Of a stretch of DNA of 64,000 nucleotides, positions 1-28,629 are shown piece after piece (within the stretch, counting starts at the first letter, position 1; every line of letters starts with the position of its first letter). The DNA lies in IMG/VR virus record IMGVR_UViG_3300049855_000348, positions 156,490 to 220,489 of that record; one strand, 5' to 3'. The position numbers and the translations under genes are program-made. The notes below the pieces were generated by a model. The model worked only from the letters and a program-made list of their open reading frames with translations. It was not told the origin of the DNA and ran no database searches.

Positions 1-495
1 TGTCGCCACTGGCATCGACAACTGCATGCTGTCCAGAACTTCGGCACGATCGAGATGCACCTGGAATAGCGAGATGGCCATTGCACGGTTGTGCTGGGCC
101 AGTTGCAGGTCCTTGTTCAACAGGACTGCGAGGTTCTTCTCGAACGTACCCTGATCGCTCAGATCGAACGTAGTGGGTGCTGAAGCATCGGCCTTGGCCA
201 CTGTTCCACGTGGAACAACGCTTGGCAGCGCCACGGCCTTTGGACCACCAGCGGCAGCAGCCGGCTGACCCTGGCCGGAACCGCCCTGCCCGCCCGGCTG
301 ACCCTGGCCGCCAGCGGCTTGCGCGACCGCATTGGCCGGTTGAGCGGTCAATGGCGGGGCGATGGCCTGCGACTGTGGCGTAGGCGGCGGGAGCGCCACC
401 GCCTTGTGAGCCGGGTTCTGAGAGGTGGGCAGCGTCCCGAGGAGGTCATCCAGCATCTGGATGGCGGGTGGTTCTGGGGGCTGCTCTCCACTCAT
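1..495 (-). CDS. Hypothetical protein, Pro/Gln/Gly-rich N-terminus (runs off the window edge)
   Basis: ATG at 495 overlaps the TGA of the upstream gene (ATGA). The frame is open to position 1: MSGEQPPEPPAIQMLDDLLG...; not in the ORF track. Confidence 0.75.
   Translation of the reverse strand, partial: MSGEQPPEPPAIQMLDDLLGTLPTSQNPAHKAVALPPPTPQSQAIAPPLTAQPANAVAQAAGGQGQPGGQGGSGQGQPAAAAGGPKAVALPSVVPRGTVAKADASAPTTFDLSDQGTFEKNLAVLLNKDLQLAQHNRAMAISLFQVHLDRAEVLDSMQLSMPVAT
202..217. promoter_or_regulatory. parS-like 16-bp palindrome TGTTCCACGTGGAACA
   Basis: Perfect palindrome matching the bacterial chromosomal parS consensus family (TGTTNCACGTGAAACA and variants). Confidence 0.55.
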
Positions 496-1220
496 GCGTT
501 GAAGACCTGATCCAGCAGCTTGGTACGCTCCTCATCCGACAGCACGGCCTCTTTGAGTTCGGTGCTGCGGGGCGTGGTGAGCTTGCCGGGATTGGTGATC
601 TCGTGATGACCCTGCGGACGGCCTGCGCCGTCCTTGCCGTAGCCAGCCGGCACGTTCTTGCCGTCAGCGCCAGGGAAGATGTCCTTGGCACGCTGCGCTG
701 GGCGCTTGTCAGCCGCATCATCGTTGAAGGACTGCTTGTCGTCCGGGTTTGCAGCATCTTCAGCGGGCTGGACGGTGAGTTTTTCAACAGCCGTGCTGCC
801 ACCTTCAACACTCTCGACAGCCTGCACCACCGGCTTGCCGGAGGCACCCTGCTGACGATTCGCCATGGCATCCTGCTGGATGCCTTTGGAGGCGGCAGTC
901 GGGCTGATCTTGGTCGGCTTCGGCTGGGCGGTGAGGTTCTTGTTCACCTGCTCCTGCTGCTTCGGGTCGATACCCTGCTGGTGGGCCATGTCCGCCTTGA
1001 CGGCCTGATCACCCTGCTGGGCGTTGGCGGCAGCGGTGGCCTGCACTCCATTGGCCAGTTGCTGGGCGGCAGTCTGCACCTGCTGCTGGGGCTTGCCCGG
1101 TGCCATCTTCACCGGCTTGCCGGGAGTGGGCAGGGCGGTGCCGCCAGCGGCCTGGGCATTGGAGGAACCCTGAAGTTCTTCCAGGATGGCGGCGACGTTT
1201 TCGTGGTAGACTCGGCGCAT
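492..1220 (-). CDS. Hypothetical Gln/Ala/Pro-rich protein, possibly an internal head protein
   Basis: Phage-like codon usage, operon context, N-terminal ...AILEE resembling a prohead-protease site. Confidence 0.75.
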   Translation of the reverse strand: MRRVYHENVAAILEELQGSSNAQAAGGTALPTPGKPVKMAPGKPQQQVQTAAQQLANGVQATAAANAQQGDQAVKADMAHQQGIDPKQQEQVNKNLTAQPKPTKISPTAASKGIQQDAMANRQQGASGKPVVQAVESVEGGSTAVEKLTVQPAEDAANPDDKQSFNDDAADKRPAQRAKDIFPGADGKNVPAGYGKDGAGRPQGHHEITNPGKLTTPRSTELKEAVLSDEERTKLLDQVFNA

Positions 1221-1223
1221 AGG

Positions 1224-1892
1224 TCAGACCTTTTTGAACTGGATGGCCAACTGGCTCTTGAGCACCCCAGCACCAACAGGCTTGAGCGCCTTGGACTGGA
1301 CGATGCGACCGAAACGACGGAGGGCGAGCGGATCCTTGGGATCGAGGGCGCTCTGCGTCTTCATGACGCGCACGATCTCCTTGACCAAGTTCGGCGACAT
1401 GACCTTCGAGCCCGGATCGACAGTCGTTCCCAGGGGAGCGATAGCACGGGTGACGTTGTCGAAACGGCGAATGCGCAGACTCGAACCGTCACGGCTGATG
1501 CGGTAGTGCTTGCCCTGTTTGCCGACGGCAACGATGGCAAGAATCTTGCTCTCTTTGAGATCGAAAAGGTTGGAATAGCCGATGTAATCCGCATTTTGGT
1601 AATGCAGACCACCCTTGCTCAGGAAGGTGATGTCGTAGCCCAGATCACGCAGCACCCACGACAGCGTCTGGAGCGTGCTGAGGAACTGGCCGTAGTCGCT
1701 GATGTCGATCGGGTAGTCGGTGCCACCCCACTTGTTCTTGATCGGACCCTTGGCCTCGACCTTCTTGACGATCGTGTTGATGCGATCGGCCTTCTCGTCG
1801 GAGCCGCTTTCACCGGTGGCGTAGGCCATGCCGTTGTAGGGCCAGCGATTCTGGAAGCCGGCGTTCTTGCGTTGGATGGTCAGCAGGTCCAT
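1224..1892 (-). CDS. Hypothetical protein
   Basis: 222-aa ORF tightly packed in the operon. Confidence 0.8.
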   Translation of the reverse strand: MDLLTIQRKNAGFQNRWPYNGMAYATGESGSDEKADRINTIVKKVEAKGPIKNKWGGTDYPIDISDYGQFLSTLQTLSWVLRDLGYDITFLSKGGLHYQNADYIGYSNLFDLKESKILAIVAVGKQGKHYRISRDGSSLRIRRFDNVTRAIAPLGTTVDPGSKVMSPNLVKEIVRVMKTQSALDPKDPLALRRFGRIVQSKALKPVGAGVLKSQLAIQFKKV

Positions 1893-1895
1893 GGG

Positions 1896-2453
1896 TTACT
1901 CCACCAGCTTGGCGAGATCTTTGACGGCGTTCATCACGGCCTGGATGGGGCCACGCAACGTCAGTTTGTGAGTCTTGATCGAGTTGTCGCTGGCCTTGTT
2001 CTCGGTCAGCGCCTGGATGAGCAGGTCGACGGTCTTGATATTGGCCGTCACCTCGGTCATCTTGTCGGACACGTCCTGGAGAGTGTTCAACGACGTGGCA
2101 GGCTTCTTGAGCTTGACTTCTGGGTTCGTGGGTGGCTTTGCGCCCTGATTTTGGCCGTTGGGGGCTCCAGCCTTGTTTTGTGGCTGCATGCCGCTAGCCT
2201 GCCCGGCCTTGGGATCCACCGCTGGGGCTTCACCCGGCATATCGAGGGGCGACGTGCCACCAGCTTCGCTGATGATATCCTCGGGCTTCATGCGAACGCC
2301 GAGTTCTTCCAGAACGCTGTTGACGCGGGGATCCACCTTGCCGCGCTCTTCGCGCATCTTGTTTTCCGAATGGTTCGGATCGACGCCCATCTTCTGGAGG
2401 GCTTTGGCGACTTGGGCATTCACTCCACCGGTGCGTTTCTGAAACATGGTCAC
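1896..2453 (-). CDS. Hypothetical protein
   Basis: 185-aa ORF with GGGAG upstream of the start region. Confidence 0.75.
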   Translation of the reverse strand: MTMFQKRTGGVNAQVAKALQKMGVDPNHSENKMREERGKVDPRVNSVLEELGVRMKPEDIISEAGGTSPLDMPGEAPAVDPKAGQASGMQPQNKAGAPNGQNQGAKPPTNPEVKLKKPATSLNTLQDVSDKMTEVTANIKTVDLLIQALTENKASDNSIKTHKLTLRGPIQAVMNAVKDLAKLVE

Positions 2454-2486
2454 TCCCGGCTATCAGCCTGTCACATAGGTACCAGC

Positions 2487-3938
2487 ATGTTGACCTTCTC
2501 CTACTCGAACGCTTGGACAGCCACCTACCAGGGTGACGTTCGGGGCGTCGCGTGGCTGAAGCGTCTGTTCACCTACACCGACATGGCAGACACCCGGCAC
2601 AAGCAGCGGCTGGGTTATTTTCCCTCCTACTGCACGCTCGACACCGATGGGTGCCGGATGTCCCACGGGCAGGTGATCCACGCTGTACGGCACGCCAAAG
2701 CCGACGGCATCCCCATCACGATCAATGACCCCAGTTGCCGGTATCTGGTCGAATCTGGTCCTATCCCGCCAGATTACCTTCCGGAGATCACCGGGTACGA
2801 CTACCAACTTTTGTCAGCCCAGATCGCCCTGGGCAGCGGGCACGGGCTGGTGGTGATCGCCACCGGTGGTGGCAAGACCGTCGTGATCGGGATGGTGCTC
2901 AAAGCTCTGGCCACCATGACCAACGTTCAGGGTATCCTGATCCTGATCTACTCGAAGGACCTGCTGAACCAAACCGCCAAGCGGATGGAGAAGTACGGTG
3001 TCCCAAGTGACGACATCGGTGTCATCCACTCCGACATCCCACCAGCCAAGCAGGCTATCGCAGCCACGAAGCGCATCGTGCTCGCCACCCACACCTCCAT
3101 CGCCAAGTACCATGGGGTGATCGAACGGACGCAATACGTGCTGGTCGATGAGGGTCACCGGGCGGTCGGCCCACTTTACTCCGCCCTGTTCGGCAAGCTG
3201 CCCAACCTCGTGAACATCCTCGGCTTCACCGCCACACCATGGGACAACGAAGCTGAGCGGATGAAGATGCTGGCGATCTATGGCCAGATCCTGGTGAACA
3301 TCCCGGTGCGCTTCCTCATCGATCGCGGTGTGTTGATGAATCCCGAGGTCTACTTCATCAAGCTCTACTACAAAGACCGCGACATCAAACTGTGCAATCA
3401 GATGGAATGGCGTGAAGCCAAGACTCAGTTCATTCTTGAAGACCGTAACCGCAATCTGCTACCGATCGTTGCTCTGAAGAAGTTCGGTGGTCGCATGCTC
3501 GTCATCTATGACGATCTCGACCATGGCGAGCATCTACAACAACTTTACATCGAGCAAGGTTTCGAGACTCGTCTCGCTGAAGGAAAGACTTCCACTAAGA
3601 ATCGTGCGAATGCCATCGAATGGTTCGAGCAAGACTGCGAGCCTGGACAGTGGGGCAAGGTTCTGCTCGCCTCGAAGGTATTCGATGAGGGTGTCGACAT
3701 CAAAGGCGGCTGCGACATTTTCTTCGCCATCGGTGCCGGAAAAGATGTCAGCAAAGTTGCACAGCGACTCGGTCGTGCTCTACGAAAAAACCGCAGCGGT
3801 AAACTGCGGTGTTTCGACTGCCAGGACAGCAATCATCCAATCCTGTCGCGGTGGTCATCCACTCGTCGTGGGGCGATCGAGGATCTGAAGATTCCGGTGA
3901 AGACGATCAGCCTGGAAGAGTTTGCGGTTCTGACTTGA
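2487..3938 (+). CDS. uvsW: SF2 DNA helicase, UvsW-like
   Basis: Motif I ATGGGKT, motif II VDEGH, motif III GFTATP, motif V FDEGVD, motif VI QRLGRALR. Start re-assigned to ATG 2487; the upstream part of ORF 468..3938 is an antisense shadow. Confidence 0.88.
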   Translation: MLTFSYSNAWTATYQGDVRGVAWLKRLFTYTDMADTRHKQRLGYFPSYCTLDTDGCRMSHGQVIHAVRHAKADGIPITINDPSCRYLVESGPIPPDYLPEITGYDYQLLSAQIALGSGHGLVVIATGGGKTVVIGMVLKALATMTNVQGILILIYSKDLLNQTAKRMEKYGVPSDDIGVIHSDIPPAKQAIAATKRIVLATHTSIAKYHGVIERTQYVLVDEGHRAVGPLYSALFGKLPNLVNILGFTATPWDNEAERMKMLAIYGQILVNIPVRFLIDRGVLMNPEVYFIKLYYKDRDIKLCNQMEWREAKTQFILEDRNRNLLPIVALKKFGGRMLVIYDDLDHGEHLQQLYIEQGFETRLAEGKTSTKNRANAIEWFEQDCEPGQWGKVLLASKVFDEGVDIKGGCDIFFAIGAGKDVSKVAQRLGRALRKNRSGKLRCFDCQDSNHPILSRWSSTRRGAIEDLKIPVKTISLEEFAVLT

Positions 3939-8737: not shown

Positions 8738-9360
8738 CAGACGTGGTTGTAGCCGTCCCCACCGTTATCGACGATGCTCTTGGCAGCAACGTTGATCGAT
8801 GGAGCGGTACCAGACTTCGGCCAGTTGGTGTCGAGATCGCGGTTGGCGATATCGGTTTCGTTGACGATGAACGGACGGATCAGACGTTCAGCCCATCCAC
8901 CGACTTCAACCTGAGCCAAGGTGGCTGACTTGTAGAGGATCATGCGACCTTCGTCGCCGACCTGAGCACCTGCGGACATGATCTTTTCGATCACACCGCC
9001 ACCAACGACAGCGCGGGTCGTGTAGGTGTACTCGGATGACGACTTGAGGAACGTGTAGTCCTGGTTCGGTTTGAGACCACTGTTGGTCGGCACGAAGCCA
9101 GAGCCATGCACCGTCGGGACACGCAGAACTTTTGACGGCACCTCTTTCTGCGCTGTCAGACCCGGCTGAACAACGAAGTTCATGTCCCCGATGGTGAACT
9201 GGAGGACCTGATTCTTCTGGTTGTTCTGCGTCTGGAGTGCAGGGTTCTGATTCACTGCCGTCGAATCAAATGGATAGGTGGCGAGCATGGCGTGTTTCTC
9301 CACGCCTATGTAGCTGGACGCAGCGAAAATCAGAGTCAGGAGGGCCAGGGTCCTGATCAT
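8737..9360 (-). CDS. Hypothetical protein with an N-terminal hydrophobic segment
   Basis: MIRTLALLTLIFAASSYIG; overlaps the upstream stop. Confidence 0.7.
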   Translation of the reverse strand: MIRTLALLTLIFAASSYIGVEKHAMLATYPFDSTAVNQNPALQTQNNQKNQVLQFTIGDMNFVVQPGLTAQKEVPSKVLRVPTVHGSGFVPTNSGLKPNQDYTFLKSSSEYTYTTRAVVGGGVIEKIMSAGAQVGDEGRMILYKSATLAQVEVGGWAERLIRPFIVNETDIANRDLDTNWPKSGTAPSINVAAKSIVDNGGDGYNHV

Positions 9361-12300
9361 ACCGGTTTGATCGCCCAGGAGGTCTGCTCATCGACCATGG
9401 TGGCCACGATGGTACCAGCACGGCTGGAACCCGGCACATCGGCGTGGGTGATGACGAAGATCCGCTTCACCCGATTGACCATGGAAGCGATCAGATCCTG
9501 CACGGCACGGCGACCCTTCACGTCGAGGGCGTCGAAGACTTCGTCGAGGGCCAAGAAGCCGGCACGGTGCCGAGAACGCTGACGGGCCAACTCGAAGATC
9601 GAGAATAGCGCAGCCAGATCGGTCCACTTGCGCTGACCGCCTGAGCGCCGGCCATACCGTTCCTGGTAGGTCAGATCCGAGTTGAAGGTGAGGGTCATCT
9701 TCCCGCCGAAGTGTTGTCCGATGTAGGACTGGACGACGAGATTGAGTTGTTTCACGCTCTGGTCAAGCAGGAAACCCCTCATGGAGCCCTTAGCGGCAAA
9801 AGCCTTGTCCCAGAACGTGATGTAAGCCGATTTCAGGTCCAGGGCATGCGCCTGAGCCTTTGAGGTTTCCATCGCAGCGAACGCAGCCTGTCGGTCGGCG
9901 ACCAAACGGTCCTTGGCGATCTTCAGAGCGGCAGCCGGGTCGGTGGCGGTGAGGTTGCGCTCCTCTTGAGCCAGGGCCGCCTCGGTAGCGGCTCCACCAG
10001 CCTCCAGGGCCGACTTTTCTTGCAGGAGGGCCGAGAGTTCCCCGGTGAGGCGTTTGTGCTCATCCTGAGCCTTCTGGAGGGCTTCTTTGGCCGAGACGAG
10101 ATCCGTCACCGCCTGTGATGCCAGGATCAGATCGGCCTTGGTCCGGTAGGCACTCATGATGGCAAGTAGACCGTCGAGGATCCGCTGGAAGCCGGAGGCA
10201 GTGATGATGTCCTCCAGCCTCTCCGGCATGGGCAGGCACTGGTTGGCCTGTTCTGCGAATCGAGCATCGACCTGCTGCCGGCGTACGGCGATGGCCTGCA
10301 ACCGAGCTTCCATGTCCGGCAGGGACTTGGTCAGCGTTTCGAGCACGGTCTTGGCCGCAGCCAACTGGGCCAGGGTGGCGAGACCCTTGAGGGATTCATC
10401 AGCCTGAACTCGCAGTGCCTGGGCTTCGCTGATGAGTTTGGTCTGTTCGGCTTTGTAGGTCCGGTACCCTGCTCGCAGGCTCTCCAACTCAGCGTTGAGA
10501 CCCTTCACCACGTTGACCATCGATTCGCCATTGATCGAAGTCAGACACGTCGGGCAGTCACCACCAGTGGTGAGCTTTGAGAGCTTTTCAGCCTTCTGTG
10601 AGATCGGCGTTGCTTGCGTGGTGGTGGCCTCGGCCTTCGCACCTTCAGCCGCAGCCAACTGATCTTTCTGTGTTGCCTCTTGGCGGAGGACGTTGGCACG
10701 TTCATTGGCAGCAACCACTGCCGCTTCCTGTTTCAGTGCCGCTTCGAGACCAGTGATGCGATCACGAACAGTGCCGATCTCCGACTTGAGGATGTTCTCC
10801 TCGTTGGTGATGTTGTTGTGATCGATGCAGCGGGAATTCCAAAGCGATTGAAAGCGAACGATGTTCTTGTTGGTCTCTTCCGCCTTGTCGACGTTGGCCT
10901 TCGCCTCGACACGGATCGCCTCGACACCACCAGAGAGTAGTTGGACCTTCTCGGTCGCAGCCTTCACCACATCGTTGCTGTACTGAATAGTCTGCTCACC
11001 ACTGGCTTCTGCATACATCAAACGTTCGCGTTCTTGACGCATCTTGACCTGATGGTCGTTCTTGCGCTGGGCCACTGAACTCAACATCACCTGATGATTC
11101 TTTTCAGCGTCGAGGATCTGCGTTTCGATGGCAGAGATCTGCGCTGCTGAGCGTTCGATTTCACCAGCACGAACCTTCTGAATGTTGGCCTGTTGTTCGA
11201 GTTGATCACTCATGAGTTTCTTCAACTCACGAGTCTTCTCCAGGTAAGCGTCGAAGCGTTCGAGACCCAGCATCTCTTCGATCATGGCACGACGTTTCTT
11301 CTCGTCTCCGGTCATGAAGTTGGCCGTCACGTTTTGGCCCATGATGTAGGAACGACTGTAGGTCTCACGGTCGATGCCGATGAGATCGATGATCATCTTC
11401 TGGGTAGCTTTCGGATCACCCTTCTCGAATGACTCTTGATAGACGCCATCCTTGTAGACCTTCACACCAGTACCGCCGAGGTCGTGGTACTTGCGGAAGC
11501 GTTCGATGCTCCAGCCGTTGGCATGGTTCACCCGAACGTAGCAGTTCTTCCCCTTGCCGGTGAACTGAGGGTCGTAGACCACATCGTCAGCCTTCATCTC
11601 ATCACGGATGGTCTCGCCGAAGTAGCACCAGAAGATAGCTTCGAGGAACGTGCTCTTGCCGGCACCGTTCTCACCTTCGAGGTACCACACGCCTGGACGC
11701 AGGTCATCAAAATTGATGGTGATCTTTTCCTTCACACCAAGGAAGCCCTCAAGAGTCAGGCTGGAGACTTCACCATCGAAAGCCATGCCACCCTTTTCGG
11801 CATCTTGGAAACGTGAATTCACCTCAGCGATGATCGATTTGCCGAACTGGATGGTGATGTCCACATCCAATTGACTATCGCCAGTGATGACCGACTTCAC
11901 GAAGGGCTCGACGAGGCCAGCGGCGGAGGTGGCTTCAACACCGAGGACTTCAACCTCCTGATCACGAATCGCTTTCTCGATGACCGACTCTTTGCGTACC
12001 GAGATGACACCGGCAGCTTCGAGCTTCAGTTGCAGGGCTTCGTGCTGCTCATCGGTGACGAGGTCGTCATAGATGACAGTGACGAAGCAGTCCTTGAGTG
12101 TGGTCAGATCCTGCGGCAGATCGCTGACACCGAGAACCTTGAAGGCATCGTGGTGTGGATTGAGGATGAACCGGTCGTTACCGGTATCCATGTCGAGGAC
12201 CATGATACCACGCTGGTCACCGGCATCGCCGAAATTGAACTGGAGGGGTGAGCCGCAATAGGTCACCCGGTGATCCATGCGCTGGAAGACGTGGAAGTGG

Positions 12301-12848
12301 CCAGAGTAGGTGGCCTTGAATGGGGCGAACACGTCGGGACCGACAGCACCAGAGAAGGTGGTCTTGTAGCGGGTGTTCTGTACCGCACCGTTGATGCCGA
12401 GGTGACCGAACACGGTCATCTTGGCGGCACGCTCGGGGAACTGCCGGGCGAAGTCCTGCACGAAGGCGACGATCTTCGACTGGTCTTCGTAGTAGGGGAT
12501 GAACAGGAAATGATCACCTACCGGGGTGATCTCACGGAAGACCTTGATCTTCGGATGCATATCCAGTCCGTCGAGACTGCTGACGGAGGTAGAATGCTTG
12601 AGGTTGAGATCGTGGTTGCCCAGGGTGAGGAACACCGGCCACTTGTCGGCGAGCTTGCGAAAGAAGTTGATGGCAGCCGACTGGCTGACCACATCGACCG
12701 CTTCACGGGTAACCAGGGCATCACCCATGCAGACGACGGCCTGCACGCCTTGTCGTTGGAACTCTTCAATGATCCAGTCGCCGGTTTTGATGATGCGATC
12801 CAGCCCCTGTGGCTGGAAGTGGATGTCAGAGAAGATTCCAAGTTGCAT
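9357..12848 (-). CDS. Mre11-Rad50 (SbcD-SbcC / gp47-gp46) fusion nuclease-ATPase
   Basis: Metallophosphoesterase motifs SDIH, MGD, GNHD, FGH, GHFH, then Walker A GENGAGKST, Q-loop, coiled coil with CPTC zinc hook, signature SGGQ, Walker B LALDEVFDALD, H-loop ITH. Confidence 0.92.
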   Translation of the reverse strand: MQLGIFSDIHFQPQGLDRIIKTGDWIIEEFQRQGVQAVVCMGDALVTREAVDVVSQSAAINFFRKLADKWPVFLTLGNHDLNLKHSTSVSSLDGLDMHPKIKVFREITPVGDHFLFIPYYEDQSKIVAFVQDFARQFPERAAKMTVFGHLGINGAVQNTRYKTTFSGAVGPDVFAPFKATYSGHFHVFQRMDHRVTYCGSPLQFNFGDAGDQRGIMVLDMDTGNDRFILNPHHDAFKVLGVSDLPQDLTTLKDCFVTVIYDDLVTDEQHEALQLKLEAAGVISVRKESVIEKAIRDQEVEVLGVEATSAAGLVEPFVKSVITGDSQLDVDITIQFGKSIIAEVNSRFQDAEKGGMAFDGEVSSLTLEGFLGVKEKITINFDDLRPGVWYLEGENGAGKSTFLEAIFWCYFGETIRDEMKADDVVYDPQFTGKGKNCYVRVNHANGWSIERFRKYHDLGGTGVKVYKDGVYQESFEKGDPKATQKMIIDLIGIDRETYSRSYIMGQNVTANFMTGDEKKRRAMIEEMLGLERFDAYLEKTRELKKLMSDQLEQQANIQKVRAGEIERSAAQISAIETQILDAEKNHQVMLSSVAQRKNDHQVKMRQERERLMYAEASGEQTIQYSNDVVKAATEKVQLLSGGVEAIRVEAKANVDKAEETNKNIVRFQSLWNSRCIDHNNITNEENILKSEIGTVRDRITGLEAALKQEAAVVAANERANVLRQEATQKDQLAAAEGAKAEATTTQATPISQKAEKLSKLTTGGDCPTCLTSINGESMVNVVKGLNAELESLRAGYRTYKAEQTKLISEAQALRVQADESLKGLATLAQLAAAKTVLETLTKSLPDMEARLQAIAVRRQQVDARFAEQANQCLPMPERLEDIITASGFQRILDGLLAIMSAYRTKADLILASQAVTDLVSAKEALQKAQDEHKRLTGELSALLQEKSALEAGGAATEAALAQEERNLTATDPAAALKIAKDRLVADRQAAFAAMETSKAQAHALDLKSAYITFWDKAFAAKGSMRGFLLDQSVKQLNLVVQSYIGQHFGGKMTLTFNSDLTYQERYGRRSGGQRKWTDLAALFSIFELARQRSRHRAGFLALDEVFDALDVKGRRAVQDLIASMVNRVKRIFVITHADVPGSSRAGTIVATMVDEQTSWAIKPV

Positions 12849-12854
12849 CATCTC

Positions 12855-28026: not shown

Positions 28027-28629
28027 ATGACCAAAGAACAACAATCTGTCGATGTCGAGTGCAAGCATGAGGTGGTCAACTACTCCATCCCGGCGATCTG
28101 TGCCAAGTGTGGTGCGCAGGTCGACGAGGGTATCGTAGCGGTGAAACTCTCAGACCTACCTGCCGACAAACAAGCCACGATTGCAGAACTCGCCCATGGT
28201 CTGCCTGACGTGGAGATCGGAGATGTCGAGTCGACTCCGGCTGCCATCAACATGCGTCGGCCACTCAAGATCCGTGCCGGTATCGAAAGAAAGCCCGCCA
28301 AGGCCGATTCCAAACCCTCAGAAGGCAAGAAGCCAGCCAAGGGAGCCATCACCAAGATCGAGGCTCTAAACGCCAAGGAACGCATCTTCGTGGTCAACGG
28401 GGTGAAGTTCTATGCCGCCGTGACCGACTCCGGCTTCCGGGTGCTCGCTGCCTGCCATGAGTCGAAGAAGACCCTGGAGTCGGCTGCTCGGGTGCTGGAG
28501 ATCAAAGGCTGGATCCCGAAGGTCAAACGCTCGAAGGACGACAAGAGTCTGTTCTCGCTGGAAGCCAAAGAGAAGCGCCCGTCCGGCCCCTGGCCTGATG
28601 AGGACCCAGTCGAAGAGAAGAAAGCCTAG
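28027..28629 (+). CDS. Hypothetical protein with an N-terminal zinc ribbon
   Basis: CKHE...ICAKCG. Confidence 0.7.
   Translation: MTKEQQSVDVECKHEVVNYSIPAICAKCGAQVDEGIVAVKLSDLPADKQATIAELAHGLPDVEIGDVESTPAAINMRRPLKIRAGIERKPAKADSKPSEGKKPAKGAITKIEALNAKERIFVVNGVKFYAAVTDSGFRVLAACHESKKTLESAARVLEIKGWIPKVKRSKDDKSLFSLEAKEKRPSGPWPDEDPVEEKKA

Follow-up and report, generated by a model that had tools for sequence, protein, structure and literature searches.

Bacterial chromosomes carry centromere-like parS sites with the general consensus tGTTNCACGTGNAACa, which are bound by ParB as part of the ParABS segregation system; ParB-parS is the main bacterial system for chromosome segregation and SMC loading. 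[quoted passage not shown] Pseudomonas species share this C5/G12 form, whereas most species use TGTTTCACGTGAAACA (PMC5450999), and Myxococcus xanthus uses a near-identical site (PMC7022226). A single chromosomal parS can suffice for ParAB-dependent stabilization of an extrachromosomal replicon: in P. aeruginosa, the parAB operon plus a single parS2 stabilizes an otherwise unstable plasmid (PMC4368675), and a comparable result is reported for Bacillus subtilis (Lin & Grossman 1998). Phages and plasmid-prophages such as P1 (parABS), N15 (sopAB) and actinobacteriophages (parABS) encode their own ParA and ParB next to element-specific parS sites. By contrast, the integrative mobilizable element SGI1 lacks its own ParB and carries two mimics of the IncC-plasmid parS, which bind the plasmid's ParB and stabilize SGI1 (PMC10954446).

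Here we describe a 220,489-bp environmental jumbo phage (IMG/VR record IMGVR_UViG_3300049855_000348) that has no detectable partition genes and carries two perfect copies of a chromosomal-type parS sequence. The window analyzed initially comprises 64,000 nucleotides, bases 156,490-220,489 of this record. We propose that these sites are orphan centromere mimics that would load ParB of the host, although binding is inferred from sequence alone.

Two parS sequences in a jumbo phage without ParA or ParB

The original prediction described a perfect 16-bp parS palindrome inside a phage gene, in a low-complexity coding segment written with A-ending codons, and this observation is confirmed. The palindrome, TGTTCCACGTGGAACA (site 2), is letter-for-letter P. 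aeruginosa parS2/parS3, matches the general consensus and has an intact CACGTG core. It lies in a minus-strand ORF of 231 amino acids, where it encodes V-P-R-G-T within a Pro/Gly/Gln/Ala-rich linker. The ORF belongs to an ORFan family found only in this jumbo-phage group and, like its neighbors, returned no Pfam or PHROG hit. An AlphaFold2 model of low overall confidence (mean pLDDT 54) predicts a short N-terminal helix, a disordered linker of roughly 85 residues (pLDDT below 50 for most of residues 22-108) and a conserved C-terminal helical domain, with confident helices only at 118-217. The remark on codon usage was also correct: in this genome ACA makes up 9% of Thr codons, GGA 12.5% of Gly, GTT 23% of Val, CCA 27% of Pro and CGT 35% of Arg, and the joint probability that VVPRGT is written with exactly these codons is 5.6e-5.

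Only one copy had been noted, which is true of the window but not of the genome. A search of the whole record identified a second perfect copy (site 1) in the intergenic gap between a 144-aa and a 93-aa ORF, where it extends to the 18-bp palindrome GTGTTCCACGTGGAACAC. No copies with one or two mismatches exist, and the nearest match has three. From base composition (56% GC), about 4.6e-5 perfect copies are expected in 220 kb, and the Poisson probability of two or more is about 1e-9; a shuffle test that allowed 3 mismatches gave 0.36 expected and so does not measure the perfect match. The two sites are 128.6 kb apart, with 91.8 kb on the other arc of a 220.4-kb circle, and thus do not cluster as origin-proximal chromosomal sites do. 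The half-sites GTTCCAC and GTTTCAC are not enriched, and GC skew was uninformative as a guide to the origin. Another palindrome of 14 bp, TCTGGTCGACCAGA, also occurs twice, but both copies spell LVDQ in common-looking codons inside genes and we judged it to be chance.

Table 1. Coordinates of the parS sites and of other features of the phage record. L001 is the locus that holds site 1, L123-L125 and L127 are further loci of this genome, and L137 and L141 are contigs of relatives.
Feature	Window (strand)	Genome (strand)	Other coordinates
parS site 2	202-217	156691-156706	
parS site 1	outside the window	28096-28111	L001 1501-1516
231-aa ORF containing site 2 (window holds its 5' two-thirds)	1-495 (-)	156289-156984	
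Coding region of the hypervariable low-complexity linker (residues ~22-108; parS codons at residues 93-98)	172-432 (-)		
Upstream neighbor gene (242 aa, low-complexity, unknown function)	492-1220 (-)		
1156-aa antisense open frame	468-3938 (+)		
1164-aa SbcD-SbcC-like fusion	9357-12851 (-)		
Conserved block downstream of site 1		~28112-28205	L001 1517-1610; L141 1990-2110
Two tRNA arrays		18.5-23.0 kb and 39.9-40.8 kb	L123-L125
tmRNA			L127 5462-5837 (-)
14-bp palindrome TCTGGTCGACCAGA	outside the window	69609 and 101253	
3994-aa giant ORF	outside the window	124178-136162 (-)	
Portal		145031-147010	
Large terminase		147272-149209	
548-aa ORF (phrog_3170)		149217-151146 (-)	L137 16977-18849 (relative)
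Terminal overlap		1-128 and 220362-220489	

The assignment to a phage gene is correct, as a large terminase and a portal lie 7-11 kb away. The genome also encodes a DNA polymerase, a DnaB-type helicase, a UvsX-like recombinase, an endolysin-like protein and a single ORF that fuses an SbcD-like nuclease (residues 1-348) to an SbcC-like SMC-type ATPase (residues 363-1138), a fusion shared with the distant relatives L137 and L138. There are 31 tRNA genes in two arrays that flank the region holding site 1, including tRNAs that read the rare CCA, GGA and ACA codons, and a full-length tmRNA (Rfam RF00023, 97 bits) with the unusual tag DDHVEYGRIALAA. Next to the terminase gene, relatives encode a protein with ART-PolyVal (ADP-ribosyltransferase-like) and BubE domain hits, whereas the orthologue in this phage hits only phrog_3170 (unknown function). 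The antisense open frame runs opposite a series of conserved minus-strand genes and is almost certainly a GC-rich shadow ORF rather than a gene. The 128-bp exact terminal overlap is most simply an assembly signature of a circular or circularly permuted genome, as a circular assembly at k=127 would produce, and says nothing about the physical ends of the phage DNA.

Profile searches of the complete record at E<=1, with responding positive controls, detected no ParB_N, HTH_ParB, AAA_31 or CbiA (ParA-type ATPases), tyrosine integrase, resolvase or tubulin, and the neighbors of both sites have no Pfam or PHROG match to partition proteins. No close relatives were found among cultured phages, by DNA or with the 231-aa protein, or in IMG/VR with three proteins, and the DnaB helicase is only about 26% identical to the best phage hits. 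The record was assembled from a freshwater sediment metagenome, and small shares of its sequence words (5-18%), suggesting relatives, occur in freshwater, rhizosphere, beach-sand and wetland runs. The tRNAs, the tmRNA and a search of an endolysin atlas were uninformative as to the host. The parS sequence does not name the host either, since an exact-match scan of species genomes found the 16-mer in Bacteroidota, Acidobacteriota, Verrucomicrobiota, Planctomycetota, Myxococcota and Alpha- and Gammaproteobacteria, often as 2-5 copies within a few kb, which identifies it as a bona fide chromosomal parS form.

Conservation of the sites in metagenomic relatives

A single non-conserved copy had been named in advance as evidence against a parS function, and neither part of that description applies. 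The 231-aa protein has 41 metagenomic homologues, and we compared the DNA of ten contigs (L131-L140) together with L265, the single locus returned by a metagenome scan with the protein alignment. The upstream neighbor gene is syntenic with the parS-bearing gene in L131-L139. L131, L132 and L133 (73-81% protein identity) retain TGTTCCACGTGGAACA perfectly. L134 (68%) has GGTTCCACGTGGAACA and L135 (55%) has TGTTCCACGTGGAACC, which are the natural high-affinity parS1/parS4 sequence, read on the other strand in L134. L136 (67%) carries a Pro->Ser change (CCA->TCA) giving TGTTTCACGTGGAACA, which alters the protein but produces a position-5 transition that occurs naturally in chromosomal parS sites (PMC5450999). 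In L265 (66% in the best segment), TGTTCCCCGTGGAACA reflects a synonymous CCA->CCC change that breaks the CACGTG core and would weaken binding. The more distant L137 and L138-L140 (50-55%) lack parS at this position (6-8 mismatches) and encode the same peptide region in ordinary GC-ending codons. Short contigs from two related sequencing runs (X2 and X4) cover window 177-370 and show no difference within site 2 among the differences examined, but the X4 contig is probably the one represented by L133 and this adds little.

Among the seven parS-bearing sequences (this phage and L131-L136), only 28 of 100 columns with a conserved amino acid keep one codon throughout, and pairwise codon identity to the reference is 0.51-0.66. 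Yet the 16-nt parS window shows 3 summed mismatches over the six relatives, against a mean of 21.6 and a median of 19 for 16-nt windows in this gene, placing it among the most conserved stretches even though the codons immediately around it differ in nearly every sequence. These data demonstrate selection on the DNA beyond coding constraint. Some of the conservation is nevertheless protein constraint, as the motif P-S-V-V-x-R is partly conserved where parS is absent and P85, P91 and R96 are invariant in all 20 aligned homologues. It therefore appears that a sub-clade wrote parS into a pre-existing motif through codon choice and has kept it since.

Site 1 has a positional orthologue in one relative. 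The upstream 144-aa protein has a single homologue (50% identity), whose contig, L141, comes from the same assembly as L134. In L141, TGTTCCACATGGAACT directly follows a stop codon at the start of the syntenic intergenic region, with one core and one outer mismatch, and is probably weak. This region ends in a block conserved with the reference (including gatctcccacaaagtgaccatgg) just upstream of the orthologous 93-aa ORF. The block is unique in the genome and lacks a sigma-70-like promoter, and may be a phage-specific promoter or a 5' leader; no sigma-70-like promoter or terminator was found at site 1.

parS 16-mers across viral contigs

Our data suggest a broader pattern. The exact 16-mer occurs in at least 120 IMG/VR contigs, against 3 for its reversed, same-composition palindrome, and the canonical TGTTTCACGTGAAACA in at least 119, against 2 for its control, an over-representation of at least 40-fold. 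The 120 loci fall into 91 clusters with unrelated flanks and span 23-71% GC; in 65 the site lies inside a long open frame and in 28 it looks intergenic. Some IMG/VR records may be plasmids or carry host flanks, and several contigs with the canonical site show origin-like clusters of 3-5 sites, so the figure is an upper bound on true phage cases. Even so, the signal is strong and mostly ParB-less: of 42 parS-bearing records of 22 kb or more, 40 lack ParB_N, as do all but 1 of the 15 records that are at least 90% complete. Most records carry one copy and six carry two. None of these 15 records has a tyrosine integrase, and 3 hit Terminase_6N.

We consider it possible, though somewhat less likely than not, that host-chromosome parS sites are a widespread and so far unrecognized class of cis-acting hijack elements in non-integrating phages. 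In this view, many unrelated viral lineages, including this jumbo phage, have independently written one or two perfect parS sites into their genomes, even inside coding sequence, to load host ParB-CTP clamps, and through them ParA or SMC, onto viral DNA. The purpose would be positioning or inheritance of phage genomes, sabotage of host segregation, or passing as 'self' to SMC-family surveillance of foreign DNA.

Interpretation and relation to known systems

The original prediction further proposed that the sequence is a chromosomal-type parS and that the phage may recruit or titrate host ParB/SMC to position or segregate its DNA. This interpretation is partly supported: the identification as a chromosomal-type parS is supported, whereas recruitment or titration of host ParB/SMC is a hypothesis. 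We propose that, in the infected cell, chromosomal ParB dimers of the host would recognize the two sites, bind CTP, close into clamps and slide over flanking phage DNA, forming partition complexes on each phage genome. Through ParA, and SMC in many bacteria, phage DNA would then be positioned, spaced or segregated like a host origin region, which would allow a non-integrating 220-kb genome to be inherited while the host still divides (a carrier or pseudolysogenic state, or early infection) and would keep replicating genomes individualized. As copy number rises, the same sites would drain ParB from the host origin as a side effect. The sequence identity, the copy number, the absence of detectable phage ParA and ParB and the DNA-level purifying selection rest on our analyses; ParB binding and loading, the presence in the host of a ParB with this specificity and every benefit to the phage are inferred from established ParB biology, and involvement of SMC is pure extrapolation. 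We regard functional ParB binding as fairly likely and the overall hitch-hiking model as about as likely as not. The phage looks virulent (own replisome, 31 tRNAs, no integrase), and partition matters less in a fast lytic cycle; its DNA may also be modified, since a methyltransferase-domain protein is present, and this could block ParB.

The same sequence evidence is compatible with a ParB sink, in which the sites mainly titrate ParB from the chromosome origin as the phage genome amplifies, derailing host segregation and ParB-dependent cell-cycle control, with the positioning of phage DNA irrelevant. The phage has its own replisome and probably reaches high copy number, amplification of the SGI1 mimics destabilizes the competing replicon (PMC10954446), and extra or misplaced parS sites disturb segregation in P. 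aeruginosa (PMC4368675). However, two sites per genome form a weak sink compared with an array, and loss of parB or of all parS sites is not lethal in Pseudomonas. We consider this reading doubtful as the main function, although it does not exclude hitch-hiking.

Two further alternatives are disfavored. The palindrome could be the operator of an unrecognized phage DNA-binding protein, or a site at which host ParB merely represses adjacent phage genes, with its identity to parS convergent or incidental to segregation. Site 1 lies about 30 bp upstream of the block conserved in L141, most phage ORFs have no annotation, and ParB bound at parS3/parS4 represses adjacent promoters in P. aeruginosa (PMC5521831). 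This is unlikely, as chance 16/16 identity to parS is improbable, the variants in relatives match natural ParB sites, site 2 sits in the middle of a gene in a late or structural module, an odd place for an operator, and enrichment of the 16-mer in 91 unrelated viral lineages argues for a shared host factor. Least likely is that the VVPRGT peptide alone is under constraint, for example as a processing or interaction motif, and that the second copy is chance or recently captured host DNA. The invariant residues and the persistence of P-[ST]-[VI]-V-x-R in relatives without parS are consistent with a peptide requirement, but those relatives use common GC-ending codons (GTC ACC CGC, GTC GCC CGT GGC), so the peptide does not require the parS codons, L136 changes the peptide while keeping the parS consensus, the second copy is non-coding, and the flanks of both sites are phage-specific and syntenic in relatives, with no host-like DNA.

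Literature searches, limited to an open-access collection, found no description of a lytic or jumbo phage carrying host chromosomal parS or borrowing the host's centromere. If host ParB loads on these sites, this would be a new route of host takeover or of episomal, carrier-state persistence for large virulent-looking phages, would explain the over-representation of parS 16-mers in viral contigs, and parS type could then serve as a host-range clue for uncultured phages. The case also shows cleanly how a putative DNA-binding site can be written into a predicted disordered protein linker through codon choice.

Compared with chromosomal parS, the phage sequence is identical over 16 bp and its relatives carry the parS1/parS4 and position-5 transition variants, but the sites are on a viral genome without detectable parAB, as two isolated copies rather than an origin-proximal cluster next to parAB, and one is embedded in an ORFan gene. 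As in P1, N15 and the actinobacteriophages, a phage genome carries a centromere-like site, presumably for positioning or inheritance of non-integrated DNA; this phage is not a member of those self-contained cassettes, since adjacent ParA and ParB genes were not found and its sites are of the host chromosomal type. The plasmids stabilized by parAB with a single parS are laboratory constructs, and in the P. aeruginosa case the operon was supplied together with the site, whereas here the arrangement evolved naturally in a virus. The strategy resembles that of SGI1, for which function is demonstrated while here it is only inferred: an element without its own ParB carries two copies of the parS of a co-resident replicon, here the host chromosome, which is assumed to use this parS. 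SGI1 mimics a plasmid centromere, whereas here a jumbo phage would mimic the centromere of the host chromosome.
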